Positions 30,900-57,710 of a stretch of 64,000 nucleotides of DNA are shown here, in pieces. Each line of letters starts with the position of its first letter. Positions within the stretch are counted from its first letter, which is position 1. This stretch comes from Basidiobolus meristosporus CBS 931.73 (taxonomy: Eukaryota > Fungi > Basidiobolomycota), in contig MCFE01000276.1 in NCBI GenBank assembly GCA_002104905.1, forward strand, positions 1 to 64,000, written 5' to 3'. Both the position numbers and the translations under genes were made by a program. The notes under the pieces are model-generated. The model ran no database searches and was not told the DNA's origin. It was given only the letters and a program-made list of their open reading frames with translations.

Positions 30900-31888
30900 G
30901 GCGCAAACCAGAACAAGCTGCGTTGGTCAACCAATGGCCAACTTATTAACTGGTATTCACTATGGGACCCTAACTGCTGGTAATGGCACCATGAGGTGGC
31001 CAAACATGACAATTGGTACTCCTGAATACTCCAGGTGATTGCCAACCCACCTGGCCGACCCACATGATTGGATGTTGTCTGCTAGATCAATCTAAGCAAT
31101 ACAATATAATCAGTGGATTTTTCATGCACTTCCGTGGCTTCGCACATCTCCATGTGTATCACACACCTGTGATACATTCGTCTGATGTCCCACTTCGGTT
31201 GCTCACCAAGCTTAGTAACCGCTTAGTGAGGAATGTGCATCGACCTGGGTTGCCCACATGCTGCCGACTGGAGCCGTTGTGGCTGATATACGGACATTCT
31301 GCGAGTAGCACATGGCGCTTCACCTACAAGGGTGTATTCATGCATCGTAGGAACAGGCGGTAGGTCTAATGAAATTCCCGCTCACTACTCTGCCACAGGG
31401 ACGGGTGTGATACGTCATTTTGTGCCAACTCAATCTTGAAAATCCCGTCGCGGTTCCCGTAAACCCGATCCCATATCGGGTCTGCCAGACTCGTTTGCCC
31501 AATAAATCTGCCCAACCGTATCCTCCATTTGCCTAGTGGAAGCACTCGATGAGACCGACCTCCCACTGTGGTGCTTCTTGTTACGTTGTTGATCTCTCTC
31601 TATCTTCCAAGCTCATGCCACCGGGTTTCATTCAGTCAAGTTGCCAGAATTGATGCTCCATTGTGAGTCTGATGGCTGCCTACTACGGCTTAGTCAAATA
31701 TGTGCCTGGGTTCTCTACCCTCTAGGGGCTTCACCAAGCTCAACTGGTGGTTCTCTCTTGCCGGAATAAAGCAACCGAACATCTTGTAGAGCTTGCTTGC
31801 AGTCATAGCAAGAATGCTTTGTGGGAGGTCCTAGGGAGCTATTTGAGTGATGCGGGGTCATTGAGGGTTGTAGCTGGTTAGTGACTAA

Positions 31889-33788
31889 TGTTGTAAAAGT
31901 TTTGGAGATATTGGAAGTGATTGGCAGAACAAGTGGATGCTGTGGTTTCACTTAATGCTTTGTTGAGAGTCAAAGTGGTATTTGTACTTTTACATAGCCT
32001 TGGCAAACACGCAGAATATTTTTCGAAAGGTCCCTAAAGCATGTGCGCAAAGCTTGGGGACGTTTGGGCATCTTCGAGGATTTTCTTGTCCTTGGTACAT
32101 TGTATTTTGGTAAAATGTTCTAGGCGGATCCCAACAGCAAACTTAGGCGAGATATTCTTGGACTTGTAGTCTATGGTCTCAGTGACTAAGCTAATGGAGT
32201 ATCCGGTACAACCATGAGATTAACAGTATTCCCACTTAACTTAATGCTCATATTGACTAGGCATAACTGTGATCTAATATATTCCAACTTGTCTCACACT
32301 AATGGTTTTGTAAGTATATCTGCAGTTATTTCACCAGCTGGGTAGTAATCTAAGGCTATCCTCTGTATCTTCCTAGATGACATGACACCTGACCTATATT
32401 TATATAGTTCAAGCACAAAAACTGGGATCTCTGCCAAATAAACTATATCATTGATTGTGCTGAAATATAGTGGTAAGAAAGTTTTCATTGAAGCTCAAGC
32501 CTTTAAAATGCTTTCTTCACCACATTACTGCTTTTGTAGCCATACATGCTGCTATATCTTGCACTTCTGTAGTGGAAAGACCCACAGTCAGTTGCTTTCT
32601 AGAATTTTATGAGATGGCCCCTTGATGATAATTGAAGGTATGGCCTACAATAGATTTTCTACTTTCTAGATACTTTGCCCAATCTGCATCAGGATATTGT
32701 AAATGTTCATGTCCTAAAATGTAAAAGTAGCATGGATACTTTGGCCAGGTCTTGGCAAAACAAGATAATGCACCATGTTTAGGAAGGTCCTAAGAACATG
32801 GGTGCAAAGTTTGGGGCTGTTGAGACAACCTTGAGAAATCTCATGTTCCAGGCACCTGAGACTTTGGTGAATATATTCAGGTAAGTCCCATCAGTAATTT
32901 GGCCAATATTGTTTAAGATTTGTGGGAAATATTTCAATTAGATCCCACCAAGGAACTTGGTCAGTATTCTCCAAGATTAATAGGTAATAATCTAAGTTAC
33001 CAAGTCTGGTCAGTGTTGAGGTGTGATTGCATATTTATACAACACTCCCACTCAACTAAGGGTTTAAATCAACTAGTCCCAAATGTGATCTGAAGTACAT
33101 GAATTCTGTTCTAACCAGTAAGTTTTAAGAGTCTGAGAGATATTAGAAGTGATTGGAACAACAAGTAGATTATGTGGTTCTTACTCAATAATTTGTTGAA
33201 TATAAAGGTGATATTTACACCTTTAGATAGTCTTGGCAAAACAATCAGACAGAATATGCTTGGGAAGGTTCCCAGAACATGTGTGCAAAGATTAGGGTTG
33301 TTAAGACAACTTTCAGAAATTTTATGTTCTGGGTACCTGATGTTTGGTGAAGGTATCCTGAGCAAATCCTAACAAGGAGTTTGATCAGTATTCTCTGAGA
33401 TTTGTAGGTAATGATCTAAGCCTTCCAGACTTAATGGTTAGATCTATCCAACTTTTCAGCAGAGGGAAAACTTTCAGCAATGGCCATAGTAGACTTGCAG
33501 AGAATGACAGCTTAGGGCTCATCACCAGTTGTAGGAATTGTGGACAATTGGAAATGATTGGGAGAGCAAGTAGATTATGTGGTTTTCACTTTACGCTTTA
33601 CTGAAGCTTCACTGAATGTAAAAGCAGTAATTATACTTTTGCATTTGCTGGGGTGCCTGATGTTTTGGTGAGAATATTCCAAGTAAATCCCAACAAGGAG
33701 TTTGGTCAGTACTCTCTAGATTTATAGGTAATTATTCAAGTTACCAAGTCAGGTGAATACTCTGGTGATGTTAGAAACTTTTACAACA
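31889..33788 (-). mobile_element. Stack of copia family A debris: four LTR copies, RNase H stubs, and one PBS+gag start
   Basis: LTRs at ~31889-32228, ~32755-33044, ~33121-33420 and ~33527-33788. RNase H remnant ADILTKPL at 32294-32488. PPT beside 33044. PBS-like GGTGATGAGCCC at 33526-33515. Confidence 0.82.
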
Positions 33789-33849
33789 TTGCTCCTACGG
33801 TAAGGGATTCCTGACAAGTTGGACACCATGCAATGTTTCTAATCCCCAT

Positions 33850-34590
33850 GAGAAATAACTTGGTCCTGCAGGTGGATCCAATCAGGATCAGCTGTCAAGA
33901 TCCTGCATTGAGGCTGTCACAATGCTGGCACCTTGGAATTAATGACCCTCTTTACAATCTTATGACAGAATAGTTCTGGGGTTTTGCTGATTCTACTGCT
34001 AAATTAGTAAATAGACTTGACAGCAATTAAGCAGTCCTTTGATGGGATTTCAATGATATTTGAACAGTCTCATGGTGGTCTATGCTTATTTGAGCACACC
34101 CAACCAGCCAGTACATGCAAACACAATATATTGAAAAAACTTGATGGTATTTCAATGGCCTAGATGCAGTCATCTGTTGGCATTGTAGCAGCAGTACAGC
34201 TGCCTAGAGCTAGTCCTATGTAATACTATCATACCAATTTATAAAATGGAATTCTCTATTGTTACCTCCCCTTGCACCATTCATATATTGCTTTGCAGTA
34301 TCACCCCAATTTATTTGCCTACCCATTACTACAGTGGATTTTGCACTTATAGTTTGAATCAAAAGAAACTATGGCCTCCTGCTTAGTAACCTCTACATAC
34401 ATGTTTACCCACTGCAATTGATGCACTTCTATCACCTCAACTTTATGGCTTTCAGTGTAATACTTGCAAAGTTGCCATAACCTTGTATTGCTGGTAACAT
34501 ATACATCCTCCAAACATATGTACAGCTGCCACCACTTTTGCCATGAAAAGCTCCTGAATATCTGAAAAGAACCTTTTGGTAATTGGCCGG
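33850..34590 (-). mobile_element. 3' fragment of a CMC/En-Spm-like DNA transposon (copy C)
   Basis: Inverted homology to 53150-53930 and direct homology to 44620-44790 (the KVEVIEV..Q coding segment plus downstream sequence). Confidence 0.65.
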
Positions 34591-35389
34591 TAGACTTGTT
34601 CCATTGTACCATGCCAGGGCAAATGGCGCTATCTGTGGTTGCAGAGAACAATTGGGCGCATTATTGTAGCTACCAGTAGGCAGAATAGCTCTTGGACAAT
34701 TTTGCATTATGTGGGACAATCTTGCACACTATGACACAATCTGACACAATGAGGTTGGCACAGATGATTGTGTCAGCTTGCAATCTTGCATCATATATGA
34801 AATTGGAGACCACTATTGTGGTAGGTAAAATCCAGTATTTGGATATGTTTCTTTAAGGTCAATGGAAATAAATGTGTATCACACTATAAGCTACACTCAC
34901 AGCCCAAGTGTTCATTGTCAGTCAGTTCACCAGAAGTAACTTGCTGATGATAAGGTGTAACAGCACTTGCAGAACTTGATATGTTGGCATGTCCCTTGTC
35001 TAAGTATAATCTGATGTTACATGTTGATGCAACTTGGCCTGCTCCAATGAACTTAGGTCTAAATGAGCAGTTTGGCAAGTTCTGGTAGTTGGCATCAACC
35101 TGATCTTATATGAAGCACATATGAAAACTAATGTGATTGTTGAATTTTCCATAAATTATGCATAATGCATCTTGACTTGCATTGACACAGATCAGATCAC
35201 ATCAATTGCGGATTTCCTATTTTATTATAGACTTGTGAGTAAATCATCAATAAAATTGCCAAGTAATTGTTTGAGGATGATGTTGCAATATAATGATGGG
35301 ATACATAGCAATTGATGAAGATTTGATCATAATGCATGGAAAATCAGATAAATTAAGCTGATTGCACCAAACCAATCCAATTCACATAA

Positions 35390-35960
35390 ACTTGAGTACC
35401 TATCAGCTTTTTATTGCATACACATCTAAATGGCCTTTTCTCATCAATCCCATCACTACCACTGGATTTCCTTTTGACACATTGGAGGAGATCTATACCA
35501 AGTAAGGTGGAAAATCTACCCCAATCTACTAAAGGAGATCCTTTGTTAAGCTTCTCTGCTATTACAAGAATTATTGCCCTACAAGGTTTGATCTCACAAT
35601 CCATGCCAACAAAGTCCTAGAAGCTTCTATTCCCAGCTGACAGCAATGGAGAACCACCTTGCAGAGGGTATGAATGACTTAGAGCAAGCTTGGAGTACTA
35701 GGTTCAGAAGCTCTAAGAGACTTCCATATCCAGGAGTGCTGAGCAACAGGTTCCATATCAGGAGTACTTTGGGTACCTTCCCAGTCAGGATTAACAGACC
35801 TTCTAGAAGGCAGAGGCCCTTTAATTCTTGCAAATACAAGGCACATTGGGTGATGTTTCAAGCACTCTCTGACCTTGAGGGTAACATCATCTGGTTTAGT
35901 AGGCCATTTGCTGGAAGTAGGCATGACAAAGCACTCTGGGAAGAGAATTGTTGTATCTAA
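35390..35960 (+). mobile_element. PIF/Harbinger- or ISL2EU-like (DDE_Tnp_4) transposase remnant
   Basis: GTFPVRINRP...KAHWVMFQALSDLEGNIIWFSRPFAGSRHDKALW resembles the DGT-x-I-x-RP / H-x-K-x-Q / GS-x-HD pattern; contains stops and frameshifts. Confidence 0.7.
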
Positions 35961-35997
35961 GAGAAAAGTGTGAAAAAACTCTTGAATGAGTTAACTG

Positions 35998-36346
35998 CGC
36001 TGTAAAAATATATAAATCCACCTATGTATTCACCTAACTTAGTGACTTAGATCATTACCTGCAAATTCTAGAGAATACTGACCAAGTTCCTTATTGGGAT
36101 TCACTTAGAATATTTCACCAAAATTTCAGGTACCAAGAACATGAAAATTAGATAAGTTGTCCAAACAGTCCCAAACTTTGTACACATGTTCATGGGACCT
36201 TCCTAGGCCTATGCTACATGCTTGTTATGCCAAGACCATGCAAAAGTATAAATACTACTTTTTGATTCAATAAATCATTAAGTGAAAACCTCCTATTCTA
36301 GTTGTCCTCCCAAATCACTTCCAGTATCTCCAAGACTCTTACAACA
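35998..36346 (+). repeat. Copia family A 5' LTR
   Basis: Homologous to 973-1304; ends TTACAACA; the 5' end is slightly decayed. Confidence 0.88.
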
Positions 36347-36358
36347 GGTTATGAGCCC
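36347..36358 (+). promoter_or_regulatory. Primer-binding site GGTTATGAGCCC, complementary to the anticodon arm of tRNA-iMet (tRNA-half type)
   Basis: Directly abuts the LTR. It is the reverse complement of GGGCUCAUAACC and has variants at 33526 and 62394. Confidence 0.8.
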
Positions 36359-36568
36359 CAAGCTGTCACTCTCAGCAATGTCCACTACTGCTATTACTGG
36401 GATTTTTCCCTCTGCTGAAAAGTTGAATGGTTCCAACTACCAAGTGTGGAGGGTGAAGATGAAGATGCTGCTATGAGAAAGAGGCCTTTAGGATATTGTT
36501 ATGGGAGAAGAATGCCCTCCTAAAAATGTGCGAGATGAATTCTTAAAGTACCAGAAGAAAGAACAATG

Positions 36569-37097
36569 TGTCATGATCACATGACAACCATGAACACCCA
36601 TGCCAAGTTTCAGCTTCCTAGCTCAATTTCTAAGAAATTCCTTCTGGAACCTTCTACCACCTTCCAGAAAGTTCCTGACCATTCCAAACCATTGTCACAC
36701 AATGGAACATTCCATGGAAGCTTTCCATTGTATTTTCATAGTCCAGTACCATATATGGAAATACCAGGTCACATGACTTAGTCACATGATCAGGTGACCC
36801 AATCCATTTCCCCATCCTGTCTCAGTGCCGTGTCATCTATGTCATTATCCCTAGCACCATTGCTGTGCCTCACCCCACAACCCCATTAGTATTAGCTAAT
36901 ATCTCTCGGCATCAGTATAGCCAAAAAGTATATATAGTCCTATCCCCCCTTAAAGTATTCCTCAGTCTGATAAACACAGGTCTTGAATAAACAGCCTTGC
37001 CTTGGAAATCCGCCTTGCCTTGTTGATCCACACCTAAGTCCTTTCTTGGTCCTGCCTTGCCTAGCCCTACTCTCCTGCCTTGTGTCTATTCATAACA
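36569..37097 (+). repeat. Chromovirus 5' LTR (529 bp)
   Basis: TGTCATG...CATAACA; TATATATA at 36929-36936; AATAAA at 36986-36991; nine mismatches to the 3' LTR by eye. Confidence 0.95.
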
Positions 37098-37099
37098 GT

Positions 37100-37110
37100 T
37101 TTATCAGACT
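37100..37110 (+). promoter_or_regulatory. Self-priming PBS TTTATCAGACT
   Basis: Exact reverse complement of LTR bases 36964-36974 (AGTCTGATAAA); no TGG-type tRNA PBS is present. Confidence 0.75.
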
Positions 37111-37503
37111 CTCCTGACTTACCTGTGGATCCCTGCCTTCTGCCCAAAGTTTGAAGAAAACTTGTAAAAGGAATACTCACCGTAAGTATCACCCATCATC
37201 TTTCACTAGTCTTGTCCTATAAAGGCAAAGATACTTTATCTTTGTAAAACAATTGGTCAAAGCTGCATTCACTTTATTACCCTGCTGGTGGAGTTTACAG
37301 TTGTTACAGTATTGGAAGCTTTAGTACAATACTCTATCAAAGGACATTGAAACCAGTACCTTCTGAAGTGACGCTAACTTATTTAAGTTGGGGATTGTGG
37401 CTTAATAGTTGTATTCTTGACATACTAGTGGCTTTACAAACCCACAACCTAGTTTAGTATATTCCAGTATTCCTTGCAAGTTCATCCGCCTTCCACTGCT
37501 ACC

Positions 37504-38436
37504 ATGTCCAACCTAGAGCTGAACTTTGCCCAGCTCATGGCTGCCTTTACCCAACTGCAGCAAGATCATGCAGACCTCAGAAACACTCTTGCTCAGTTCC
37601 AGAACCAAAGTGTCCAGCAAACTAGCCATGTCCCAGTCTACCAAGAACCCAAGTATACTCCTGCTACCAAGTTCAATGGCTCTCAGAATGAATTCCGTGG
37701 CTTCATCAACATGGTGAAGAACAATCTTGCACTCCAGCCCAACCGGTACCCCACTGACCAGGCCAAAGTTGGTTTCATCTCCAACCTGCTTACTGGTACA
37801 GCTCTCAACTGGTTCTCCCCATTAGTGGAGACCAACTCCCCCCTCCTCAGAGACTACCAAGCTTTTCTCACTGAAATGGAGCTAACATTTGGTAACCTTG
37901 ACCAAGCCAGAACTGCTGCCAACAAGATCAAGACCCTCAAACAAGGGAACAAACCAGCATCAGTCTACGCCTCAGAATTCCGACAACTCTCCAGTGACCT
38001 CAGCTCCTGGGGTCAAGCAGCCTTGATAAGCCAATTCCAAGATGGCCTTAGTGATGAAGTTTGTGATCTGCTACTCACACTCCCAGATCCAAATACATTG
38101 GTTGAGGCTATGCACCAAGCAATCCGGTGTGATAACAGACTATTCCAGAAGAAGCAAAAGAACCGTTAAAGACATATTCCTGTTGCAGTCCCAGCCCCTC
38201 CTGCTCCCCAAGTCACTCCAGAAGATCCTATGCAGATTGATAGTGCCAAATACAAGAAACTATCAAAGAGTGAAAAGTCCAGACGTCAACAAGCCAACCT
38301 CTGTCTATACTGTGGCCAACCAGGTCACTTTGCCAAATCCTGCCCCAACAAGAAGTCCAGCTTCAAGCTGATGCAGTCCTCCAGTAACCAACCTGATTCA
38401 GATCTGTCAGGAAACTCCAATGTCCAGTTGCACTGA
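37504..38436 (+). pseudogene. Chromovirus gag (one in-frame TAA at 38167-38169)
   Basis: Retrotrans_gag-like LTGTALNWF and YASEFRQL; PMQID; zinc knuckle CLYCGQPGHFAKSC. Confidence 0.9.
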
Positions 38437-38453
38437 CAGGCTTGCAACTGGAC
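38409..38453 (+). promoter_or_regulatory. Candidate -1 ribosomal frameshift signal (gag-pol)
   Basis: AGGAAAC, then a 6-nt spacer, then an 11-bp perfect stem (38422-38432 / 38443-38453). The -1 frame is open from 38415 into the protease. Confidence 0.7.
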
Positions 38454-41400
38454 CCACCCATGAGAATCCAGCATATCCAAGAATCTTCCTTTGCCACAAA
38501 ATCTATCCAGTCCTTGAGAATGCCTGTCAAAATCCAGATCCCGGACTCCAGTCCTGTCCCAGCCCTAACCCTGATTGATTCCGGTGCTTCATCCTGTTTC
38601 ATTGACCAAGCCTTTGTCCAGAAGCACTCTATTCCTGTTACCTTGAAATCCTGTCCAGTCCAAGTAGAAGTTATTGATGGAAGATCACTCTCCTCTGGTG
38701 CCGTTGTGGTAGGGTAAACATACCTCCCACAGACAAGTTTATTCATATAGTCATTATGATATACTTATCCATATTTTATCTTATCAGTGTTATCCCATTC
38801 TTATTTTGCCCATATTATCAGTATTATCCCCATATAATGTTTACCCTGATTAGTTATTAGCATTAGTTATCCCAGATGTTATTCAGTTTTGTGATCAGTA
38901 GATGTATCTATATAAGGCAAGTACCCACGTCAGTACCCATGACACATGACCTAGGTCTGTGTTACCATCCCTACCATTTCAATACCATATATGGTATTTC
39001 TATGTTGCACAGGTTTCAGACTACTGATACCTGATTGGTTGAGAGTGCTGTGCCTTTTAGAACCTTCCAGGACATTCTTGGCATATTTTTAGCTCATAGT
39101 GATGTCATCAAGAATTCCACTGATACCTAGAATCTTCTAGAACCTTGTCATTAGTAATCACTTGGCAATCAGGAAAAGTATTTAAGGGAAAGCAATCTCT
39201 CATCAATAAATCATCCCTTCTATCAGTAACACTTCTACCTTATTGATTAGCAGTTGATCACTGCACCTGCCTTCAACAGTACATCTCAGACCTGCCATCA
39301 AGGAGCTTTTCAGGGTAGTGCACAAGACACACAGAGGCCTTTGGAGACACTTGGAGCACCTAGGAAGCTAGAGAAGCAGGAGCTTTTACCATAGTGACAT
39401 ATTGACAAAGACACCAGCAGTTTAGACACAGAGGTTATTGCACCCATCAGACACCTCACACACCTTGAGTTGTGTAGCTTCTCCCAGGAGTACCTCTACA
39501 GCACCACACTGTTACCCATGAAACATGCTTACTCCAGCTGTCCAGTACTGCCCACCAAGAAAGAATTGCCTTCAACATCATCAACTCACCACACTATTCT
39601 ATTGTGCTTGGAAGCTCATGGTTGAGCTACCACAATCCAAGTATTGATTGGAAATCCAAGATCCTGTCATTCACCAGATCCCACCAAGTCAACTCCATGA
39701 AATCTCCAGACCCTGATAACCGTGAAAAGACTGTTGCCAACAGTTCAAAAACCCAAGATACCTTGTCAGCTGAAGGAGCCCCCTCAGCAAATATACCAGC
39801 CAAGTACCAAGAGTTTGCCCATGTCTTTGACAAGAAGAAAGCAGAACTCCTCCCTGATCATCAGCCTTATGACTGCCCTATTGACCTTGAAGATGGAAAA
39901 GCCCCTCCATTTTGCCCAATATACAACCTCTCCCAGCCAGAGTTGAAAGAACTCCATGGTTATATTGAAGAAAACCTCCAGAAGGGTTTTATTCAGCACT
40001 CCAAATCACCTGCTGGAGCCCCAATCCTCTTTGTCAAGAAGAAGGATGGCACACTCAGAATGTGTGTGGACTACCGTGCTTTGAATAAGATCACAGTTAA
40101 GAACCGCTACCCCCTGCCCCTGATCAACACACTGTTGGATCAGCTATCTGCTGCCCAAGTCTTCACCAAGATTGACTTGAGAGGAGCTGACAATCTTGTC
40201 AGAATCAAACCCGGTGATGAATGGAAAACTGCCTTTTGCACAAGATATGGTCACTTTGAATACAAAGTAGTGCCATTTGGCCTCACCAATGCCCCTGCTG
40301 TGTTTCAACACCTCATGAATGACATATTCCGTGAATATCTTGACCAGTTTGTGGTACTCTACCTTGATAATATTCTCATATACTCCAAGAGCCAAGATGA
40401 ACATGATGAACATGTCAAGAAAGTATTGAGAAAACTAGACTCTACCGGTCTCTATGCCAAGCTAGAGAAGTGTGAATTTGACCAGAGAGAAGTGGAATTT
40501 CTTGGTTATCTCATCAGCCCTGAGGGAACAAGAATGAACCCAAAGAAAGTTGACTCAGTCCAATCCTGGAAAACTCCAAGCTCAGTCAAGGAAGTACAAT
40601 CCTTCCTGGGATTTGCCAACTTCTATTGCAGGTTCATAGCCAACTACTCCAAGATAGTCACCCCTCTGACAAAGCTTACCCAGAAGAACACACCTTTTGC
40701 CTGGAATGAGGAGCAATCCATCTCATTCAACCAACTCAAGAAATCTTTCCTGAAGGCCCCCCTGCTTGCCCACCCTGACCTTGAGAAGCAATTCATAGTG
40801 GAGATTGATGCTTCTGATTTTGCCCTTGGTGCCATACTCTCCCAGTTTGATGAGGACAATGTGTTGCACCCCATTGCATTCTACTCTTGGAAGTTTTCCC
40901 CTGCAGAGATCAACTATGATATCTATGATAAGGAGTTGCTTGCCATCATTGTAGCCTTTGAGCAATGGAGACACTACCTGGACGGTGCAAAACATAAAAT
41001 CAAAGTCTTCTGTGACCATAAGAACCTTGAGTACTTTGCAACATCCAAAGTACTAAACCGGAGACAAGCCAGATGGTCACGCTTCCTGTCCAGCTTTGAC
41101 TTTACTATCACCTACAGACCTGGTGCAAAGCAAGGAAAGCCTGATGCCCTGTCCAGAAAAAAGGAATATGCCCTGGAAGAGGGAGATGATGCCTGTTGGC
41201 AAATGGAACACCCATTGCTGAGCAAGAAACATTTTGAGATTCTTGCCACCCAGTCCTCAAATCTTGTCATCCCTTCATTCCTAGTAAGGATATCAGAATC
41301 CCAAGCCTCTGATATGACTTCCAGCTCCATCAAGAAATATCTGGAATCCCCAGTTGGGCCCCCTCCCAAGTTCCCAAACATCCAGAACCTGCATTTGGTA

Positions 41401-42764
41401 AACAACCTCATCTACAACAAGCAGCAGCTTTATGTCCCAGACCTTGCCACCCAGCTAGACATCATTAAGTCTTGGCATGATTCAATGGCTGCAGGCCACT
41501 TTGGTACTGCCAAAACCTTGAATGCTATCAAAAGAGATTTCTGATGGCCTAGAATGATAACTCTTATCAATGAATACATTCTGACTTGTGATATTTGCAA
41601 CCGTGCAAAACCAGCCAGACACCAGCCCTATGGACTTCTTCAGCCCTTGCCTATCCCAGAACACCAATGGAGATCTATATCTATGGACTTCATTACTGAC
41701 CTCCCTGAGTCATGTGGCTTCAATGCCATACTTGTAGTGGCTGACAGGCTGACCAAGATGGCTCACTTTATCCCTTGCTGTAAGAACACTGATGCAAAAG
41801 AAACTGCTGCATTAGTCCTGAAGAATATTTTCCGCCTTCATGGTATCCCCAGTGATATTGTGTCAGATAGAGGCCCACAGTTTGTGTCCAAGTTTTGGAA
41901 ACACTTCATGCAATACCTTGGTGTTCAAGTCAAGCTCTCTACTGCCTTCCATCCACAGTCTGATGGCCAGACTGAAAGAATCAACCAGATTCTAGAGCAA
42001 TACCTCCAGTGCTATATCAATTACCAGCAAGACAATTGGGTTGATCTACTCCCTGTTGCTGAGTTTGCCTACAACAACTCAAGCCATAGTGCAACCGGTT
42101 TTACACCATTCTATGCAAACTATGGATTCCACCCTCAGTTTGATATCCAGATTCCAACAAACCCAATGAGCCCACATGCGGCTGAACATGCCCAAGCAAT
42201 CCAGGACATCCAGAATACCCTCAGGGAAGAACTATCCTTAGCTCAGGAAAGCTACAAGAAATTGACAATCTAAAACGGCATCCCAGCCCTGATCTTAATG
42301 AAGAAGATTCTGTATGGCTGCTCAGAAGAAACATCAGCACCAACCGCCCTTGTGACAAATTGGATTTCAAGAAACTTGGTCCTTTCAAGATCAAGAAGAA
42401 GCTTAGCCCTATAGTATATCAGCTACAGTTACCAGCAAGTATGAAAATCCATGATACTTTCCATGTGTCCCTCCTGGAGCCATATTGTAGGAACACCTTG
42501 CCAAACCTGCAAGAAGCAAAGCCCCAAGCTATCCAGGTTGACCAACATCAAGAATTTGAAGTTAAACAGATTCTAGACTCTAAGTATATCTGGTCAAAGC
42601 TGTACTACTTAGTAGACTGGATTGGTTATGGCCCAAGTGACCAAACATGGGAACCAGCTACCCATCTCACTAATTGTCAAGAACTAGTTATCCAGTTCCA
42701 CCAACAATATCCTGCAAAACCTGCCCCAAAGGAAAAAAGAGCTTTGCCTGGAAGAGGAGAATAG
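38415..42764 (+). pseudogene. Chromovirus pol (protease, RT, RNase H, integrase, chromodomain), disrupted
   Basis: LIDSGAS; solo-LTR insertion within the protease; RT YLDD reads YLDN; stop at 41542-41544; frameshift near 42265; chromodomain YYLVDWIGYGPSDQTWEP. Confidence 0.92.
38705..39508. mobile_element. 804-bp solo LTR-like insertion of an unrelated family inside the chromovirus protease
   Basis: TGTGGT...CACCACA termini; flanks CCGT/CTGT (4-bp TSD with one CpG transition). Excision restores GGT GCC GTT ACC CAT GAA (GAVTHE). Confidence 0.85.
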
Positions 42765-43293
42765 TGTCATGATCACATGACAACCATGAGCACCTATGCC
42801 AAGTTTCAGCTTCCTAGCACAATTTCTAAGAAATTCCTTCTGGAACCTTCTACCACCTGCCAGAAAGTTCCTGACCATTCCAAACCATTGTTACACAAGG
42901 GAACATTCCATGGAAGCTTTCCATTGTATTTTCATAGTCCAGTACCATATATGGAAATACCAGGTCACATGACTTAGTCACATGATCAGGTGACCCAATC
43001 CATTTCCCCATCCTGTCTCAGTGCCGTGTCATCTATGCCATTATCCCTAGCACCATTGCTGTGCCTCACCCCACAACCCCATTAGTATTTGCTAATATCT
43101 CTCGGCATCAGTATAGCCAAAAAGTATATATAGTCCTATCCCCCCTTAAAGTATTCCTCAGTCTGATAAACACAGGTCTTGAATAAACAGCCTTGCCTTG
43201 GAAATCCGCCTTGCCTTGTTGATCCACACCTAAGTCCTTTCTTGGTCCTGCCTTGCCTAGCCCTACTCTTCTGCCTTGTGTCTATTCATAACA
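42765..43293 (+). repeat. Chromovirus 3' LTR (529 bp)
   Basis: About 98% identical to 36569-37097. Confidence 0.95.
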
Positions 43294-44609
43294 CAATGTG
43301 CCTACAACTGCATTTGCCTTAATGTCAAAGACAAATTGCTAATTCAATGCTCAAGGGCAAAAACAGGAAAGAATGCCTGGAAGACATTAGAAGACACCTA
43401 CCAGTCATGTTTAGCTGCTAAGAAGATGTATCTAGGACAAAAATTCTTTACTGCAAAGATGTAGCCAGAGAAGAAATGAAAAATCTAATTAACAGAATTA
43501 CCCTGCTGGTGGATGAGATGGAATCTGTGGGCATACCAAATGCTGAAGAGGAAGTGATTATAAACATCTTGAATAGCCCAACAGACAGGTTTCAGGGCCC
43601 TGTGTCAGCCCTAGAGTCTAGAACTGAGGATTTGACCTTAAATTATGTATGTTGAAGGCTCCTGGATGAAGAATTGAGAAAATCAAGCACTAATAAGAAG
43701 GAAGAAGAAAATGCTTTAATAAGCTACAAAAACCAACAATGGAGATACCAAAGACCCTACAAAGGCAACAGCAACCTGCTTTGCAGCTACTGCAAAAGGA
43801 AAGGACACACATCCAACAGGTGTTTTGAAAAGAGAGAAAATCAGCCAAAGAAGCCAGAATATGGAAATGCTGCAACTACAGAAGATAGACTTTTCATATC
43901 TGCACTAAACATGGCCACAAACAAGGATTCTCAGATGTGGTACATTGACTCTTGAGCATCTCAACACTTTACACACCAAGAAGAACGTTTTACCCAATAC
44001 CAAGAAATTCAAATTAACAAGGTTTTCATGGGTGACAATAGAACACTTGATGTAGTGGGAAAAGGAACTATCCAAGTAAACCTTAGAAGCAGTGAAGGAA
44101 GCCATACACTGACTTTTAAAGAAGTACTCTAGGTCCCAGAAATAGCCAAGAACCTGCTATCTGTAAGCAAGGCCAATACAGAAGGACTTAATTTCAGCTT
44201 TGACAATTCTGGATGCAGGATCACTGATCAAAAAAGTGCCAATATTGCTTTGAGTATCAGAGATCAGAATCTATACAAGTTGACTTATATTTCATCTGAT
44301 CTGAAAGCCAATAAATTAATATCAATGAAGAAGCACCAATGCTTTGGCACAGGAGATTGGGGCACATCAATTTTGATTATTTGCACAAAATGATCAAAGA
44401 TCAGCTGATTTCCAGGGTAAAAATTGATCCCCAGCTGGTTTTGAGCACTGTGGAGCCTCAAATATTGGAAACAAGCCAGAAAATTGCCCAAGAGCTTTGG
44501 GTTAATCAAAACTAAAAAAAATTGATTTAATTTATGCAGATCTGTGTGTACCTATGCAAAATTTATCCTTAGGCAGGATGAAGAGTTTAATAACTTATAT
44601 TGACTCAAC

Positions 44610-46340
44610 TTATATGTATACCCACTGCAATTGACACACTTCTAACACCTCAACTTTATGGCTTTCTGGTGTGATACTTGCAAGGTTGTCATATTACTTG
44701 TATTGCTGGCAACATATACATCTTACAAACATGTACTTGGTTGCTACCACTTTTGCAATGAATACCTCTGCAATATCTGCAGAGAACTTCTTGGTATTTG
44801 ACAAATTTATTCATTCTCCTTGATGGACTCTGGTCCCCTCTATGGATGTAAAAGGGTTCTTGTTTATGTGAAATCTGTGTTGAATGGTATAGAAACTAGC
44901 AGGTGACCAAGAGAAACCTGGCATACTTTGGCAAAGTTGTCCTAATAAAAATTAGTTGCTGGTTGCACCCAACCAAGCTTTACATTACATGAGTGACCAC
45001 CCATGCTAGAGACTGCATAGCTTCTTAATACCAAAGGGATAGGTGTCTACATGAGCATATCTGTCCTCAGTATTTTCCAACTCTTCCTGGCTGTCCTCTT
45101 TGTGCAACTCTTCATATCCATGATGAAATTGAGTGTAATACTTTTAATGAGATTGGGGTATGGTAGTATCTGCAACTTGACATGCATTTCTCTCTTCTCA
45201 CATATCTGCTCTATAGGAAACTTCAAAAGGTGAAGCAAGGTCCATTATTTGCAATACAGCAAGCAAGATGGAGTAGAGAATGGATACAGTAGTGGCTGAG
45301 GTCTACACATTCTGCTTTATGCTTATAGTATAGATACTCAAATCCCAGTACAAACCCCTTGAACAACGCTGTGAATGTGTCAAGTTGGCATTGGTGATCT
45401 GGTTCTGGATAAATATCTCTACAATGTCAGCATATGACGCCTAATGCTTTCAATGTACTCAAGGTAGAAATGGCTGCAGAAGGCCATTTGAAAAAACACA
45501 TATCTGGTTCATCGAGTCCTTGGATTGTATTGTTGCGTATGCATATTAGTTTTGATTGGAGCCTGTGTGAAGTACTTAGGGCAGCTATTACTCTGCCATA
45601 TCTTGCCAATTCTTTAAATTTTTCTGGTATCTCAATGGGCTCATTCAACTTGAAATGCCCCATGTACAATTTGGTCATCAATATGGGCATACTGATAAAG
45701 TGCAAATGGATTGCTTACAGTGGAAAGCTTTTGATCCAGCAGATACCCTCTATTGTAAGTATCTGTGCTTTCAATTAACACCATGTTGCAGCCAATGACT
45801 AATGACTTACCAACTTTGCTGCAATTGCATGCTGATTTCTGTACATACTCTCTAAGGGAAGATAATAGATTTGTTCCATTGGATAGTGCCACATTGAGCC
45901 ATGAGTGCCAAATAGTGCCATTAAGTGCCAGAAAGACATAGAAGACCTACACTTGACCACAGAGTATGAAATATTGCACTTCATTTTCATGCAAAGCAGC
46001 CCCTGTGTTTCACCCACTGTGATGGAGAAAATCCATTTTTTGACTTTTTTTTTGGATCAATGTTGTGCAGCATGTGTAAGAGCACAGAAGGACTGAAGAC
46101 ATGCATCTGGTACTCAATACCCATGGCACTATGAATCTAGCTCCTCTAGCCTGTATCATGTCATAAAAATGCATGGCACTATCTTGGTTCTTAGTGTTAG
46201 TGTCTGGAAAATAGTAATGTGTGTGAGTGATGAAGTAAGTTCCTTGGATTGGACACATCTGACAGAAAAAATGTCCATTATGCCCAGAAAAGCTGGCTAT
46301 CTTACTGATGGATGGGGTATATCCAATGCACAAAATTGGC
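44610..46340 (-). mobile_element. CMC/En-Spm (Transposase_21-like) remnant, copy B
   Basis: GHNGHFFCQMCPIQG; inverted homology to 51640-52600 and 53050-53400; interrupted by one arm of the foldback repeat. Confidence 0.75.
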
Positions 46341-47010
46341 TTGCTCCATTGGATAGCACCACACTGAGCAATGAGTACCTATCAATGCCATAGTGTGCTA
46401 GAAAGGCAAAGTCAACCTACATTTGGCCACAGGGTGTGAAAAATAGTTGTAAGACTTTATGCAAAGCAGCCACTGCGATTCACCTTCTGAGCTCAAAAAT
46501 ATACATTTTTTGGCCTTTTTTTGGATCATGTAGTCCTTGATGTGTCAGGGTGCCAAAGGACCAATGGCATGCATTTGGCACCCAGAATCTGGCTACAGCA
46601 GGTTTATAACTTGTCAAAAAATGTATGGTATTATCTTGTTCTGCTAGTACTATCTGGCACTTTAAGTGGTTTGTATAGGTTTTCCTTGAGGACAAATATT
46701 CAAACATAATGCCAGACCCTATGAGAGATGATTCTGATGATCCCATCAAAAAACTGCCACAGATTCAAAGTCCTGTGACTAAGAGGTACTGATTATGTCA
46801 GGACACCATGCAGAGACCATTGAGAAATAATTGCACCCCAGATTTTGCAAAAATTTTTATCAAAGTTTCCATCACAATAATACATTAATGGCTTTGGATC
46901 CATTACCTGCCAATATGCTCACTTTTGAACCCAGACACTTGATCACCTCCTTTGTTTGGGTACATTGATTGGCTATTATCTCATTTCACACTCCCTACTT
47001 CCTTACTCAG

Positions 47011-47742
47011 TAGACTTGTTCCATTGGATAGTGCCACATTGAGCCATGAGGGCCAAATGATGCCATAGTTTTGCAGAGAAGCCAAGTGAGCTATACTTGG
47101 CCACAGAGTGTGAAACATAGCTCTGCATTTTCATGCAAAGCAGCCCCTGAGTTTCACTATGATGCAGGGACAGAATTCCTTTTTTGATGTTTTTTTGTGG
47201 ATCAATGTTGTGCATAATGTGCAAGAACACAGAAGAACTGAAGACATGCATCTGGTACTCAATAACCATGGCATACTGAATTTAGCTCCTGTGGCTTGTA
47301 ACATGTCACAAAAATGCATGACACTATCTTGGTCCACTGATACCCTCTGGCACTATAAGTGCTTTGTATAGATCTTGCTTTGGGCCAATAATTAAATGTA
47401 GTTCCAGATAGTTCCAGTGGACCACAATAGTGCCATGGATTTTTGTGACGTGTTACAAGCCACAGAAGCTAGATTCAGAGTGCCATGGGTATTGCATATC
47501 AGATGCGTGTCTTCAATTCTTTTGTTCTCTTACACATCCTTCACAACATTGACCTAAAAAAAGGTCAAAAAATGGATTTTCTTCAACTCAATGGGTCAAG
47601 CATAGGGGCTGCTTTGCATGAAGATGCAGAGCTATGTTTCACACTCTGCGGCCAAGTATAGGTTCACTTGGCCTCCCTGGCACACTATGGCATCATTTGG
47701 CACTCATGGCTCAATGTGGCACCATCCAGCAGAGCAAGTCTA
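47011..47742. mobile_element. Foldback/MITE-like element with ~325-bp inverted arms, ~75-bp spacer and TA at both ends
   Basis: Left end TAGACTTGTTCC; right end GAGCAAGTCTA; arms 47011-47339 and 47415-47742 align along their length at roughly 80% by eye. Confidence 0.8.
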
Positions 47743-47849
47743 ATCATTTTTCTTACTTTTCATGCATACAAATTGATTCATTTCTGTTGAAACTTCAGCT
47801 ATACCTCAATTGCCAATTGTATTGACCTCTTCAAGTCCCTACATCCTAC

Positions 47850-49790
47850 ACTAACATTAAGCCCAATCTCATACTCAGCAAGTAACTCCATTAATATCTA
47901 CCACTCAAGAAGTTTTTCTGCTGCAATGCTCTGGTTCCATGACTTTGGCATGAACCCAATGGCTTTATGCAATTATTCATTCACTGGTATCCACATATCC
48001 TGGTCTTCAGCTGGCACTGCAAGGTCTAGCACCTCATCTACCAGTCATTGCCATAAGTCCTTGCAATATTCTAGTGCATTTTCTTGAGCACTGCTCTTGA
48101 AGAAGTGCTGCAATTTCTTGGTGTGCCTAATAATGTTCCAAAACTCTACTGAAGGCATTGTGGAAGTCTTTCAATCTCTTGTCATTGTAGCTTGTCTGTC
48201 AGAAGGATCTCCACTCTGTCAACAATGGAGGCTGTGGAGGCAGTGGTAGACATATTGCCTTTTTCTGCAAACTCATCTACCTTGCTGGAGTGTAGCGCAA
48301 CTGCATGCACTTCCAACTCTTGTGAGAACAACTGTTTTCTTGCTGGTCATTCTTCTTGGCTATGATAGGATTCAGTCTGCTCCAGGCTTGTGGCTTTAAT
48401 TGGCAAGAACTGCAGTTTTGTTTGTATGCCTCCCTGTCCCAGGCTTAGGTGACATTTTTACCTTTACCTTTTCCTTAATCACTGCCAGGTTTTCCACTGC
48501 TACTTTGTGTGAGTGCTTCTTGTAAAGAACTAAGTTTTCTCCTTGATAAGTTCTGCTCTGATGCATCTGTTTTGGCCTGCTTGTCCCTTGCTGGCACTCT
48601 TTGGGCAGCCTGATGTTTCTTTACCACTTGTTTCAAGCTCTCAACCATAGCTGCAATGGGCTCCTGTAAAAGCTGCTGGTTTTATCACTGCCAGGTCCTC
48701 TGCTGCCACTTTGACTAAGTGCTTCTTGAGTGGTAATACACCTTTACCTTGATAAATGTTGTGCTGGTGGATCCACGTCTGCCTGCTTGTTCCTAATTGG
48801 CACTCTTCCAGCAACATTACATCTCTCTGATGCTTATCTGGAGCTTTTGGTCATGCTTGAAATGGGCTCTTGAGGAAGCCAATGGTTTTTAGCCATTGAA
48901 CCCTTGTTCTACCGCCTTTGATAGTTTCTGCTATTCTTAAGATACTTTCTTAGCAAACAAATGCTGGCCTAAGATCCATTTTCCGGTTTGAATCCTGAAT
49001 AATACTCAAGGAACAAGTCAAGTGCATTCTGCTTGGCCTTGAGTTCCTGATAGTCCCATGGTATGCCAGCCTTAAGGTGGTGGCAGTCTAGACTTCTGAC
49101 AGTCTCTTAAATAATAGACCACTCTTCATTACCACACTCAACAGCTTCACAGATCTTTAATGTCTTTTGATTTTTTGGCTTTGATATAAACTTCACATTG
49201 TCTTGCTCCCATGCTGTGATAGGTTTTTTGGTAGGCTTTATCTTTTGGCACTGTTGTTGTGCTTCAGAGACTGAATGGTGCTCCTCTATTGTTACATTGG
49301 GAAATGGCATAATTCTTGGCTGTGACATTGAGCTGCTTGAGTTGCTTCTTTGCAGCAGAAGATACTGCTTTCTCTATCTGGGATATTGATTGCTCTTCAT
49401 GTATCATCCACTCATCCTATTTATGGACTATAGCCTGATTTCCCTGGGCCATTGCATCTATGCTATCAGCCACTAAACCTAATTGCTTCATTAATGCTAT
49501 GGTACAGGTCAACAACATATTTGCTAATATGGGTAGTGGTGATATTATGACAGTTACTTCATGGTCTTCAACTGAGAGTACTGTGTTTGCTAAATTCTCA
49601 TCAGCCTGAGCATGACAGTCAGCTTGTGGCTCTACAGAGGGTCCCAATTGCCTACTTGACTGGGAGCATGAGGAGCCCACATTATCATCTTCAATGCATA
49701 TACTGTCCACAGGGCCTTTTTTGGATGTAGCCCTGCTTTTTGCACTAAATGTCAAAGCAGGCTGTTGTCCAACCATTCTTCTGTTGTTAT
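47850..49790 (-). repeat. Unclassified decayed repeat with coding remnants and an internal ~206-bp duplication
   Basis: CpG-free; units start at 48481 and 48687; a deleted second copy lies at ~53940-54115. Confidence 0.5.
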
Positions 49791-50139
49791 TGTTGTCAGA
49801 GTCTTGGAGATATTGGAAGTGATTTGGAGAACAAGTGGATTATGTGGTTTTCACTTAATGATTTATTGATTGTAAAAGTAGTATTTATACTTTTACCTGG
49901 TCTTGGCATAACAAACACATAGAATAGGTTAAGGAAGGTCCCAAGAACATGTGTGCAAAGTTTGGGGCTGTCTGGACAACTTTGAGAATTTTCATGTTCT
50001 GCGTACCTGGTATTTTGGTGAAAATTTTCTAAGTAAATCCTGACAAGGAATTTGGTCAGTATTCTCTAGGATTTGAAGGTAATGATCTAAGTGACTAAGT
50101 TAGGTGCATATTTAGGTGGAATTACAAATTTTTACAACA
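49791..50139 (-). mobile_element. Copia family A solo LTR (349 bp) with perfect 5-bp TSD GTTAT
   Basis: TGTTGT...ACAACA; GTTAT at 49786-49790 and 50140-50144. Confidence 0.93.
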
Positions 50140-50339
50140 GTTATCAGTGGTGGGGTTTGGCTGGGAACCAGTCAGCTTTGCTTTATTTTTTGGCAGCATA
50201 TATATGGAAGTGATTCAAATCAAAGGGGAAATAGTGTTACATATACATGTGTATGTGGTGCCACAACTTTATTTATAATGTGTACTATGGCAGGTCATCA
50301 CTGAATCTTACATTCATGTTGGTGTAATGTCTCAAATAC

Positions 50340-53300
50340 AAGACTATCTTAATTTCACATTAGTATTTACCAAAAAGTGAGATAATTGCATTATGTTGTT
50401 GAAGGTCAAACTGTTTGCCCCATTGACAAGACTACTTTGACTCAACGCTGTAAGAGAAGAGAAAAAAGAGCATGTGGCTATTGTAGCAAGCCACTCAGCC
50501 ATGAGGCACACAGACAGCATAAGAAGTATTGCAAGGATCATGGCCAGTGTTTTGCCACACCAGTTGTATTTGACCACTCATTGGTTGCTATTATACCAGC
50601 ATTATCTTGCTGGCCAGTTGATACTTCTATATTGGCACCTGGCCATCTTTGCTTCCTTGCACAAACTGAGTCAGGTGAGTTTTGACGCCTTTAGGCTCAC
50701 CTCAGCCTTCTGAATATTGCATGCAGAGTGATAGCTCTGATAAAGAAGGTTCACTGATGAATTTTGAGCCTATCTCCCCTAACAGCAGAACCATGTGTGA
50801 GCCTGGTCAAATCCCTATATGCAATAAAACAACATCTGTTGAAATAAATCCTAGCAATACTTTATGGAGTGAGCCAAGTAATCCATCTACTGGCAAATGA
50901 TGTCATGTTGTGGCTACAGAAGTAGGGTGTTTCTACTAATATTTGTAATGGGGGCTTCGCAAATTTATTACTATTTCTTACCAATATCATACTGGGATGC
51001 AACTTACCATGTACATAGTACAAGTGCACAAATGTCATGCGGCTGGCAACATATGATCCAGAGACTGTCCTGATTCTAGCATATGGTAACAGTTGCATGG
51101 CATTAACATCCAAAAATGCTACCATTGCAATGCATCCAAATTGTCAGGAATCCACCACCATTGAGGGAGTACATTGTTCACACTCTGGATACATTCTGGT
51201 CATTCCCTGTCTGCAGAAGCTGACGCAGTCTAACAAATATTGCAAATCTATACAGTACTGCACTCAGTAACAATCAAGCACAAACGTATCCAATATATTT
51301 AATGGCAAACATTACAAACAACTAAAAAGTAAGCGCTACTTTGAAGGTATGTATGACCAAGCCTTTGCCTTAACACTTGATAGATTCTCTTTGAACAAGT
51401 ATTCTACCAGCAAATTCTGCTGGCCACTGATTCTCATCAATCTGAATATGCCACCCAACTTACAGTATCTGAGCAACAATCTTATGGTAGTCTTAATGGC
51501 ATCTGGATCAAAATCACCGTCCAACCTGGATAGCTACCTGTATTCATTGCTGGATGATTGTTGTATACTTTACAGCAGGATAATGGTTGATGACCATTAT
51601 GTAAAAGCACATATAATTATCTACAGTGAAGATACCCCAGCCATCAGCAAGATAGCAGGTTTTTCCAGGCACAATGGATGGTAATGCTGTCAAATGTGTG
51701 AGATCCAGAGGATTTACTCCATTACTCACACACATTATTATTACCCAAGCACCAGCACTAAGAACATCATCTTTCCACAGAGATAACATACAGAAGGCAG
51801 CATGCATTTGCAGCAAAGTTGGCAAGCTATAAGCCATTGGCCAGACTGTGGAATCAATTGGAAACCAAATATGCTAAAGATAGTGGGTATCTGTTGGAGC
51901 AAAAGCTTTACACTGTGAGCAATGCATTTGCTTTTCAACAATGTCCCTATATAGATGACCAAGTAGTAGATGGGACATTTCAAGCTATTTGAGCCCTTTG
52001 AGATACCAGTGTAATTTGAAAGAATTGGCAAGATATTACAGAGTATCCACCACTGTAAGTACTTCTCACAGGCTCCAATTCAGTATTCATATGCATATGC
52101 AACAATACAAATGCAACAACTGGATGAGCTGGATATGTATTTTTTCAGGTGGTGTTCTGAAGCCATTCCTATTAAGAGTACATTGGAAGCATTGGGAGTC
52201 ATTTATGGAAATTGTAGAGATATTTATTCAGCAGCAGATCACCAATGCCAACTTGACACATCTACAGCTGTAGTGCAAAGAGCTTGTGTCAGGATTTGAG
52301 CAGCTATACTACAAACACAAAGCTTACTGCTTGGATCTCTGCCCCTGCTGTATCCATTCTCTACTCCATCTTCCACTGTGTGTGGAGACTATTGGACCTA
52401 GCTGCACCTTTTGGGAGCTTCCTATAGAGTGGATGTGTTGGGAGAGAGGAAGACAAGTCAAATTGTAGTTAATACCATATCCTAATCTCCCCAAGAATAT
52501 TTCCATCATGTCCATCATGGATGTGATGAGTTAACACAAGGAGAACAGCCAGAAAGAGTTGGAAAGTACTGAGTACAAACATGCACATGGAGACACTGTT
52601 GCAATTTAAGATGTGATTTCAATATAAGGAACTTATCAAGAAATAGTGATAATAGTTGAACTGTTGCTTATTCATAAAGAAGCTCAGTATTTATACCCTT
52701 ATAGAAGTAATACAGCTGTAATACTAAGTAGGGAGGGTTTCTCAATATTCAGGAGCATTCTGTAACAGCTTCAGGGTTAGAACATAATGTTTGGTAATAG
52801 TGCTAATTTGATCCTGACTATAGGGGAATAATCATAAGGCCATATATCTGGAGAAAGTGGCAAAGTTAAGGCAGTAAATGAGTCTTATGGTGACTAAGAC
52901 TAGTCTAGAATTGTTAAGTAAATTTTTAGCTGCTGAATGATACCAAATAGTCCAATATTTCAACAGGCACCTATGCCCATGGAATTAAGAAGCAAAGCAG
53001 CCCCAATGCATGGGTAATCAGTTAAGTAATGCAAAGTTGGGTTGGGTGCAACAAGCAGCTAAATTTTACTAGGAAAACTCTACCAAGGTATGCCGGATTT
53101 CTCTTGGTCACAAGCCAACTTCTACACCATTCAATACAGAGTTCACATTAACAAAAGCCAGGGCACACCTATAAGGGGGACAAGAATCCAGCATGGAGAA
53201 GGAATATATTGGCTAAATACCAAAGGTTCTTTGCAGATACTCAGGAGGTATTCATGGCAGAAGTGGCAACAGCCAAGCATATGTTTGCAAGATGTATATG

Positions 53301-53935
53301 TTACTAACAGTACAAAGTATATGGCAACTTTGCAAGTATCATACTAAAAAGCTGTAGAGTTGAGGTGATAGAGGTATGTCAATTGTGGCAGGTGTGAGCT
53401 TTTGTAGAGGTTAGTAAGCAGAAGGCCATAGATACTTTTGACTCAAACTATAAGTACAATACCCAAGGTAGTAGTGGGTAAGCAAATGAAGAGGGGTGAT
53501 TCTACAGTGTAATATATGAGTTGCACAAGGGGAGTTAGAAAAAGGAAATACCACTTGGTAAATTGGTAAGGTAGCATTATACAGAATTAGCTGTAGCCAT
53601 CATACTGCCAATATAATGCCATGAGCATCTTGCTGTGAGGCCGACAAAATACAATCAAGTTTTTTGTCATATCAGGCAATTCATATCCTGGCCAGTTGGA
53701 TCCACTTGAAATAGTTGTAAAATGCTAAAAGACTGCAACAATACCAGCACTAATCAAATCCTGTCAAGTTTTATCCCTTTATTTGTTAAAAAATTAGCAA
53801 AACTCTGTTGTGATCCTGTCATAAGAATATCAAGAGGGTCACTAATTTCAAGCTACTGGTATTAGGATGGTTTCTAAATGGGATCCTGGGGGTTGATATG
53901 GATTGGATCCACCTACAGGACTAAATTATTTTACG
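50340..53935 (+). mobile_element. CMC/En-Spm (Transposase_21-like) DNA transposon remnant, copy A (longest)
   Basis: CWPLILINLNMPP, SPSNLDSYL, DTPAISKIAGFSRHNGW*CCQMC, IHSLLHLP...IGP...WELPIE, plus an upstream Cys/His-rich segment; many stops; termini not defined. Confidence 0.8.
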
Positions 53936-57011: not shown

Positions 57012-57653
57012 TATGTAATTCACAGTTAAATCCTCAATTCTGGATTCTAGAGCTTATATAAAGCCTTAACACATGCCTGCCATACTAGTTACAATGGCAA
57101 CTATCACATCTCATGATATCTGGTACACCCACAGAATCCACCTCATTAGCCAACTTCAAAATTTGGTTATCTAGGTCCTACATATCTTCTTCTGATGGTA
57201 TCTTTGTAGTAATCAAGTTGTGTACAGGATGTGTTTTCTTAGCTGCTGAGCAATGGCTGGCATGAGTTTCCTTAGGCCTTCAAGTGTTATGATCTACCGC
57301 TTGAATGTTTAAGTTAGATCAGTTTTTAGTCAAATCAATTAGTATATGTTTAGGTTATCAGTATATCAGTATTATCTATGAAATCAGTAGCATTAGTCAG
57401 CAAATGAATCAGCAGATCCTTATCAGACAGAAATAGATATATTAAGTAGGATCTTATTGGGTGATGATGATGCAATCAAATGAGTCATCAGCCACAACCT
57501 ACATTAGGAAATACAATTAGTCAGCAATTGATCTGGCAAAATGTATATAAGGAGCTGCTGGAACCTCAATAAAAATCAGTTCAAGTTTTAGTGAATACAA
57601 TACTAGCTAAACTCCCTATTCCTCTACAACTCTTATACCAAGACTTGTAACAT

Positions 57654-57665
57654 TGGTAGCAGCGA
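57654..57665 (+). promoter_or_regulatory. PBS TGGTAGCAGCGA, complementary to a tRNA 3' end (initiator-Met-like)
   Basis: Begins 1 nt after the LTR; the implied acceptor stem AGCAGCG has the A1:U72 pattern of eukaryotic tRNA-iMet. Confidence 0.75.
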
Positions 57666-57710
57666 TAACCAGAAACCTCCCTCCTGAAGAAAGAAGAAAC
57701 CACCCTCAAG

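Follow-up and report, generated by a model that had tools for sequence, protein, structure and literature searches.

Genomic context and organization of the elements

The window, i.e. the whole 64,000-nt stretch of DNA analyzed here, contains two Ty3/gypsy retrotransposons, E1 and E2, and an additional RT-like fragment (Table 1). The neighbouring genes of the window are compact and fungal in kind, encoding a septin, a protein kinase, a BAHD-type transferase, a SPIN90/Ldb17 protein, a ferroportin and a family-10 fucosyltransferase. The septin shares 99% of its residues with an incomplete protein from Basidiobolus meristosporus CBS 931.73 and 71% with a protein from B. ranarum, in agreement with the early-diverging fungal host suggested in a preliminary description of this DNA. 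The G+C content of the window is 44% and the observed/expected ratio of CpG is 0.45, a value compatible with cytosine methylation in Basidiobolus. The immediate surroundings of E1 are repeat-rich and gene-poor (31886-36453 and 44604-53931). A unit of about 200-300 nt recurs there on both strands (31886, 32720, 33122, 36001-36453 and 49788), and longer inverted matches with 70-86% identity link 44628-46337 to 51615-53385.

Table 1. Positions of E1, E2 and their parts in the window
Feature	Position	Strand	Basis or remark
Left target-site duplication, CAATG	36564-36568	+	Identical 5 bases at 43294-43298
Element E1	36569-43293	+	LTR retrotransposon copy, degenerate
E1 5' LTR, 529 nt, TG...CA	36569-37097	+	Aligned to 3' LTR
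TATA box TATATATA in E1 5' LTR	36929-36936	+	Direct reading
Putative self-primer arm AGTCTGATAAA (predicted transcript nt 1-11, start of R)	36964-36974	+	Reverse complement of 37100-37110
Post-arm motif CACAGGTC	36975-36982	+	Consensus fold of 17 sequences; predicted to pair with GT spacer and U5 end
AATAAA polyadenylation signal	36986-36991	+	Direct reading; sets short R
GT spacer, 2 nt, LTR end to PBS	37098-37099	+	Direct reading and LTR alignment
PBS TTTATCAGACT, complementary to predicted own 5' end	37100-37110	+	Direct reading, shuffle test, covariation
gag, broken	37504-38433	+	Outer bounds by homology to intact gag of L001 and L008
Capsid-like domain of gag	~37774-38052	+	Pfam Retrotrans_gag, DUF4939, Ty3_capsid
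pol, broken	38433-42764	+	Pfam domains, approximate bounds
PR (aspartic protease)	~38556-38693	+	Pfam
RT	~40033-40509	+	Pfam
RNase H	~40702-41097	+	Pfam
IN zinc finger	~41449-41541	+	Pfam
IN core	~41674-41955	+	Pfam
Tf2-1-type SH3	~42369-42485	+	Pfam
Chromodomain, C-terminal	~42555-42704	+	Pfam Chromo and solved structures
Polypurine tract adjoining 3' LTR	42750-42764	+	Direct reading
E1 3' LTR, 529 nt, TG...CA	42765-43293	+	Aligned to 5' LTR
Second copy of self-primer 11-mer, in 3' LTR	43160-43170		
Right target-site duplication, CAATG	43294-43298	+	Matches 36564-36568
RT-like fragment, third	54771-55183	-	DNA 70-77% identical to part of E1 RT region
Element E2, second, young Ty3/gypsy element	57285-62224	+	LTRs 57285-57652 and 61857-62224

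The two LTRs of E1 differ at 9 of their 529 positions, as found by alignment and checked with a script. The junction between the polypurine tract and the 3' LTR (GATAG followed by TG) is common to E1 and two of its relatives, L009 and L011. The domains of pol are arranged in the order PR-RT-RNase H-IN, which is that of Ty3/gypsy elements, and its closest relative of solved structure is the Ty3 Gag-Pol/RT (E = 1e-87); for gag, it is the capsid domain of PEG10. A chromodomain was located after the SH3_Tf2-1 domain (Pfam Chromo, E = 2.5e-13) and matched the solved chromodomains of MPP8, CDY and HP1 with E values down to 1e-11. Since a Ty3/gypsy pol is combined with a chromodomain at the integrase terminus, E1 is a chromovirus. 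The preliminary description had classified it in the same way, and we detected the full set of domains: gag, PR, RT, RNase H, IN, Tf2-1-type SH3 and chromodomain. The copy is decayed. Its gag carries one in-frame stop, and comparison of its pol with the intact pol of relatives revealed about two shifts of frame, an additional piece of DNA and one or two stops within the frame. With both genes broken, this copy is unable to supply its own proteins.

E2 has LTRs of 368 nt with a single mismatch between them, one reading frame for gag-PR-RT-RNase H and one for integrase. No chromodomain match was found in E2. Its primer-binding site (PBS) is of the TGG type and lies one base after the LTR.

An 11-nt complementarity between the LTR and the primer-binding site of E1

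The sequences AGTCTGATAAA, within the 5' LTR, and TTTATCAGACT, downstream of it, are exact reverse complements of each other. The bases that flank them (C36963 and C37111 on the one side, C36975 and T37099 on the other) are unpaired, which limits the contiguous match to exactly 11 nt. The downstream 11-mer starts 2 nt past the end of the 5' LTR, after the dinucleotide GT, which places this 3' arm where a PBS is expected. The upstream 11-mer begins 35 nt past the T that opens the TATA run and 33 nt past the last match to TATA[AT]A, and lies upstream of AATAAA; it is preceded by a C, so that it opens with a C-A step at the distance from the TATA box expected for a start site. The preliminary description had reported the 11-nt match, its offset from the LTR and its placement between the TATA box and AATAAA, and all of these were reproduced by direct reading, by alignment of the LTRs and from the coordinates. 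It had also stated that a tRNA-type PBS is absent, and indeed a script check found no TGG within 13 nt after the 5' LTR of E1. A tRNA scan revealed no tRNA genes in the 64,000-nt window, and no Rfam family matched it.

We estimated how often such a match would arise by chance by shuffling the LTR 20,000 times with its dinucleotide composition preserved; the complement could start at any of six offsets after the LTR and pair anywhere within it. A complement of at least 11 nt appeared in 0.06% of the shuffles (about 6 per 10,000). In the control element from the same window, E2, the longest complement between the post-LTR sequence and the LTR was 6 nt. Across the whole window, the inverted 11-mer pattern with one mismatch allowed was not enriched. 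Because E1 carries a self-complement and E2 a TGG-type PBS, two predicted priming strategies are found side by side in one genome.

Compensatory changes in related elements

A word search with a piece of gag retrieved 38 relatives, one of them 80% identical and the others about 40-55% identical; nearly all are proteins known only from metagenome or read-assembly collections. Most of the relatives come from environmental hosts other than Basidiobolus, and the reading frames that flank the metagenome relatives yielded no host identification. A scan with a gag alignment added 80 loci from metagenome contigs, while the same kind of scan of viral_contigs found no relatives. L001, the relative nearest to E1 with 80% identity in gag, has retained the two 11-mers together with the bases next to them, while the intervening R/U5 sequence has diverged. 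In the loci L008-L011, the corresponding two positions are occupied by another pair, of 12 nt, and two double changes separate L009 from L011.

The contigs of L008-L011 have the order pol-LTR-gag. Their LTRs were apparently merged by the assembler, or else the source was tandem or circular; the order keeps a whole LTR beside the PBS. In three intact relatives (L001, L008 and L011), pol is read in the frame one back from that of gag and the two overlap by 37-40 nt, an arrangement that suggests expression by frameshifting.

About 31 of the metagenome loci reached through gag share the layout of E1: TATA[AT]A, 31-33 nt, a C followed by the arm, which begins with A, then C(A/G)C and, further on, ACA, GT and the complementary arm. 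This layout was found by listing inverted pairs of at least 10 nt upstream of gag, and was recovered again with the 3' arm anchored at ACA plus 2 nt. LTR ends were determined from two copies for E1 (exactly) and L059 (roughly), and from conserved termini for the other relatives. The loci contain 13 distinct arm sequences, each with a perfectly complementary PBS of its own. The pairs are 10-12 nt long, one subfamily having a 10-nt complement and others one of 12 nt. The spacer is mostly GT, with AT or GA in a few relatives. In the 13 lineages, the arm begins at the C-A step and the complementarity ends at that very base.

Covariation was quantified in an alignment of 17 contiguous arm-to-PBS stretches, with 11 pairs counted. 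In this alignment, 98.4% of the cells were paired, compared with 25-50% when the partner was slid by 1-3 columns. Changes on both sides were observed at 9 of the 11 helix positions and one-sided changes between lineages at none (0/11). The covariation score was 0.766, against 0.187 in shuffles, and not one of the 500 shuffles reached it. The two pairs that never vary are A-A/T-T, located at the predicted cut. All differences between lineages are Watson-Crick double changes, with no G-U intermediates.

As the first searches had required complementarity, the census was repeated using the flanking context alone. Among the 42 loci collected in this way, 31 paired at 10/10 positions, six at 9/10 and one at 8/10. 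Unrelated combinations of sites paired at 6 positions at most, and the distribution was bimodal. Four of the six loci with 9 paired positions have a T opposite a G, a mismatch of the G·U type. The imperfect loci all belong to one subfamily, and their pairs look like the decay of individual copies.

Contigs of the P0025/P0022 gag subfamily (L002-L007, L012 and L013) yielded no PBS at the first pass, because they either lacked the 5' LTR or had a leader of 600-770 nt. Longer loci of this subfamily were later found to carry the arm/PBS pair. In the subfamily with the arm AGCAGATCAA (L002, 4784-5299; L020, L042, L054, L059 and L089), U3 contains tandem repeats of roughly 60 nt, and R and U5 together span just 81 nt in some copies. 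The leader between PBS and gag, which has the 600-770 nt given above, also contains repeated units.

The preliminary description had proposed that this family primes its own reverse transcription, and had named compensatory changes between the 11-mers of other copies as the evidence to look for. The conservation in L001 and the matched pairs in twelve further lineages support the proposal, and the changes on both sides of the helix supply that evidence in strong form.

Predicted structure of the leader RNA

When the E1 RNA was folded from position 36964, the 11-bp duplex was present in both the minimum-energy and the centroid structure. The overall folding energy of the 5' region was ordinary (z = -0.96), hence the folding energy by itself provides no argument. 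In the consensus fold of the 17 sequences, the duplex is followed by a bulged C, after which the helix continues, first with A-C against the G-T spacer and then with G-U-Y against R-A-C, where U5 ends. The statement of the preliminary description that the match extends in neither direction thus holds for the contiguous 11 nt, but not for the helix as a whole, in which a single bulged C is followed by two more pairs and then by the U5 end. The post-arm motif that takes part in this extension reads CACCAGTY in most relatives and CACAGGTC in E1. In the five-pair extension, 94% of the cells were paired, compared with 12-47% after sliding. Most of these positions are invariant and one pair covaries (CG in 8 sequences and UA in 6); E1 itself has one mismatch within the extension. 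With mostly invariant positions and a single covarying pair, we consider the extension of the helix into U5 suggestive only. A U5-IR-like structure has reportedly been described for Tf1, and the U5-extended helix of the E1 family recalls it.

A model of self-priming and its alternatives

The duplex between the LTR and the post-LTR sequence is real as sequence, lies at the position of the PBS and is maintained by compensatory change. Together, these data make it highly probable that E1 is a degenerate copy of a chromodomain Ty3/gypsy element whose family self-primes minus-strand DNA synthesis in the manner of Tf1. In the model that we propose, transcription would begin in the 5' LTR about 33 nt past the TATA box, at A36964, a start site suggested by the constant distance from the TATA box, the C-A step and the end of the complementarity at this base. 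Nucleotides 1-11 of the RNA would fold back onto the PBS and, past the bulged C, the duplex would be prolonged by the post-arm motif together with the GT spacer and the U5 end. By analogy with Tf1, the RNase H of the element would cut behind base 11, and synthesis from the 3' end released in this way would proceed across the 2-nt spacer, U5 and R. In the retroviral scheme, integrase removes two extra terminal bases, and the 2-nt spacer could represent the two extra bases of the cDNA end that integrase trims. The plus strand would copy the primer back into the PBS, so that a change in the arm would reach the PBS within a couple of cycles. Such recopying of the PBS from the primer would explain why only clean double changes separate the lineages.

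Four other explanations of the pairing were weighed. The first retains self-priming but places the arm inside the transcript, which would start farther upstream and provide a longer 5' fragment as the primer. The start site in our model is a prediction, and a complement that varies between 10 and 12 nt across subfamilies indicates that its 5' limit is not rigid, both of which would accommodate an internal arm. However, the distance from TATA[AT]A to the start of the arm hardly varies (31-33 nt), this start always falls on a C-A step, and in 13 lineages the complementarity stops at precisely this base; we therefore regard an upstream start as unlikely.

According to the second explanation, the helix is real but serves another function of the RNA, such as packaging, dimerization, translation control or protection of the 5' end, and priming takes another route. 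Covariation proves pairing and not priming, and a helix extended into U5 resembles structural elements of leaders in general. Against such a function, the 3' arm lies in every lineage 2 nt past the CA of the LTR, exactly at the place of a PBS, and there is no other PBS. Double changes that bypass G-U intermediates also suit a site copied anew from its partner better than they suit an ordinary stem, and experiments on the related Tf1 have demonstrated self-priming (PMC7175516). On balance, a function of the helix other than priming seems quite improbable.

Priming by a host tRNA or tRNA fragment at 37098-37110, with an incidental match to the LTR, would be the default for LTR elements, and copia-type elements include cases of half-tRNA primers without a CCA match (PMC6317226). 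No tRNA gene with which 37098-37110 could be compared occurs in the window. Nevertheless, TGG is absent after the E1 LTR, and the 13 lineages have 13 different sites, each matching its own LTR, whereas a shared tRNA would hold the site constant. We consider tRNA priming of this family very improbable. Finally, short inverted repeats are common and the one-mismatch pattern shows no enrichment in the window, but a functionless chance match, with a shuffle probability of about 6e-4 at this position and a pair that is kept in L001 and changed in a compensatory manner across lineages, has a negligible probability and is ruled out by the covariation in relatives and the context-only census.

Comparison with known self-primed elements

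Tf1 and Tf2 of Schizosaccharomyces pombe are chromodomain Ty3/gypsy elements, as is E1, and they are self-primed, as we predict for the E1 family; the integrase of E1 moreover contains an SH3 domain of the Tf2-1 type. The host of Tf1 and Tf2 is a fission yeast, whereas that of E1 is Basidiobolus. Tf1 consists of a single reading frame, unlike the intact relatives of E1 with their separate gag and pol frames, and the gag of E1, of the sushi/PEG10 type, constitutes a further difference from Tf1 and Tf2. No Tf1 or Tf2 protein was among the named matches in our protein searches with E1, and the search of solved structures gave Ty3 and no Tf1.

In Tf1, the RNA's first 11 bases form pairs with the PBS and the RNase H cut falls between bases 11 and 12 (PMC7175516), and self-priming has been proposed for the Tf1/sushi group (PMC4600332 and PMC6317226, each with reference to Butler et al. 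2001); on both points the literature agrees with what the preliminary description had stated. For Tj1 of Schizosaccharomyces japonicus, self-priming was predicted from the complementarity between LTR and PBS, which E1 shares, and a cleavage site was proposed (PMC4600332). Tj1 resides in a different host and its gag ends in a stop codon, in the manner of type-C retroviruses (PMC4600332), whereas in the relatives of E1 pol lies in another frame. Self-priming was also predicted for Tcn1 of Cryptococcus (PMC7175516) and for a group of moss and club-moss elements, the Tcn1 clade, that falls together with Tf1/sushi (PMC6317226), although an earlier study found no self-priming site in one Tcn1 element of Selaginella (PMC2864245). 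These Tcn1 elements, from Cryptococcus, mosses and club-mosses, are chromoviruses with predicted self-priming, as is E1. The JGI metagenome contigs from which many of our relatives originate may be of the Tcn1-clade kind.

The likeness of E1 to the sushi group of vertebrates rests on proteins, its gag matching DUF4939 (RTL1-8/LDOC) and the PEG10 capsid structure, whereas the host of E1 is a fungus. The RT-RNase H piece of E1 shares 47-58% identity with named proteins from frogs, fish and a lizard, and is about equally similar to proteins of fungi (Absidia, Morchella, Pleurotus, Tremellales) and of a charophyte alga. The closest named relatives of this piece come from Lithobates, Pristimantis, Mixophyes, Phyllobates, Pseudophryne, Aquarana and Ascaphus (49-58% identity). 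Basidiobolus is an amphibian-associated fungus. The frog matches may only reflect the many annotated copies in large frog genomes; the likeness might also reflect past exchange between host and gut fungus.

Ty3/gypsy elements primed by tRNA, such as E2, share with E1 the plan LTR-PBS-gag-pol-PPT-LTR and a short spacer between LTR and PBS. E2 differs from E1 in that its PBS begins with TGG and its self-complement is at most 6 nt. By predicted mechanism, chromodomain, SH3 domain and gag type, the E1 family fits among the known self-primed chromoviruses of the Tf1/sushi type. The SH3 domain, the gag and the vertebrate, fungal and algal relatives of pol lend indirect support to a candidate place in the Tf1/sushi clade.

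Implications

With E1, predicted self-priming now includes Basidiobolus, a fungal lineage that diverged early. The mechanism itself is not new, since it has already been described or predicted in the Tf1/sushi and Tcn1 groups, and E1 leaves the knowledge of how reverse transcription can be primed unchanged. What the relatives of E1 offer is an unusually clean natural covariation series, in which 13 matched variants are combined with a fixed distance from the TATA box, a fixed 2-nt spacer and an invariant A-A/T-T at the predicted cut. For annotation, elements of the E1 type should not be scored as devoid of a PBS, and the layout provides a usable search signature: TATA, about 32 nt, a C followed by the arm beginning with A, then CAC and, further downstream, ACA-GT and the complementary arm. 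More speculatively, each lineage may possess a private primer/PBS 'address' (13 were seen), which would be altered by clean double substitutions as the PBS is recopied in each cycle and would insulate the lineages from one another if a full match is needed. We put this idea forward as a doubtful but conceivable one; if it is true, the addresses would amount to a built-in route to lineage splitting that is absent from tRNA-primed elements.
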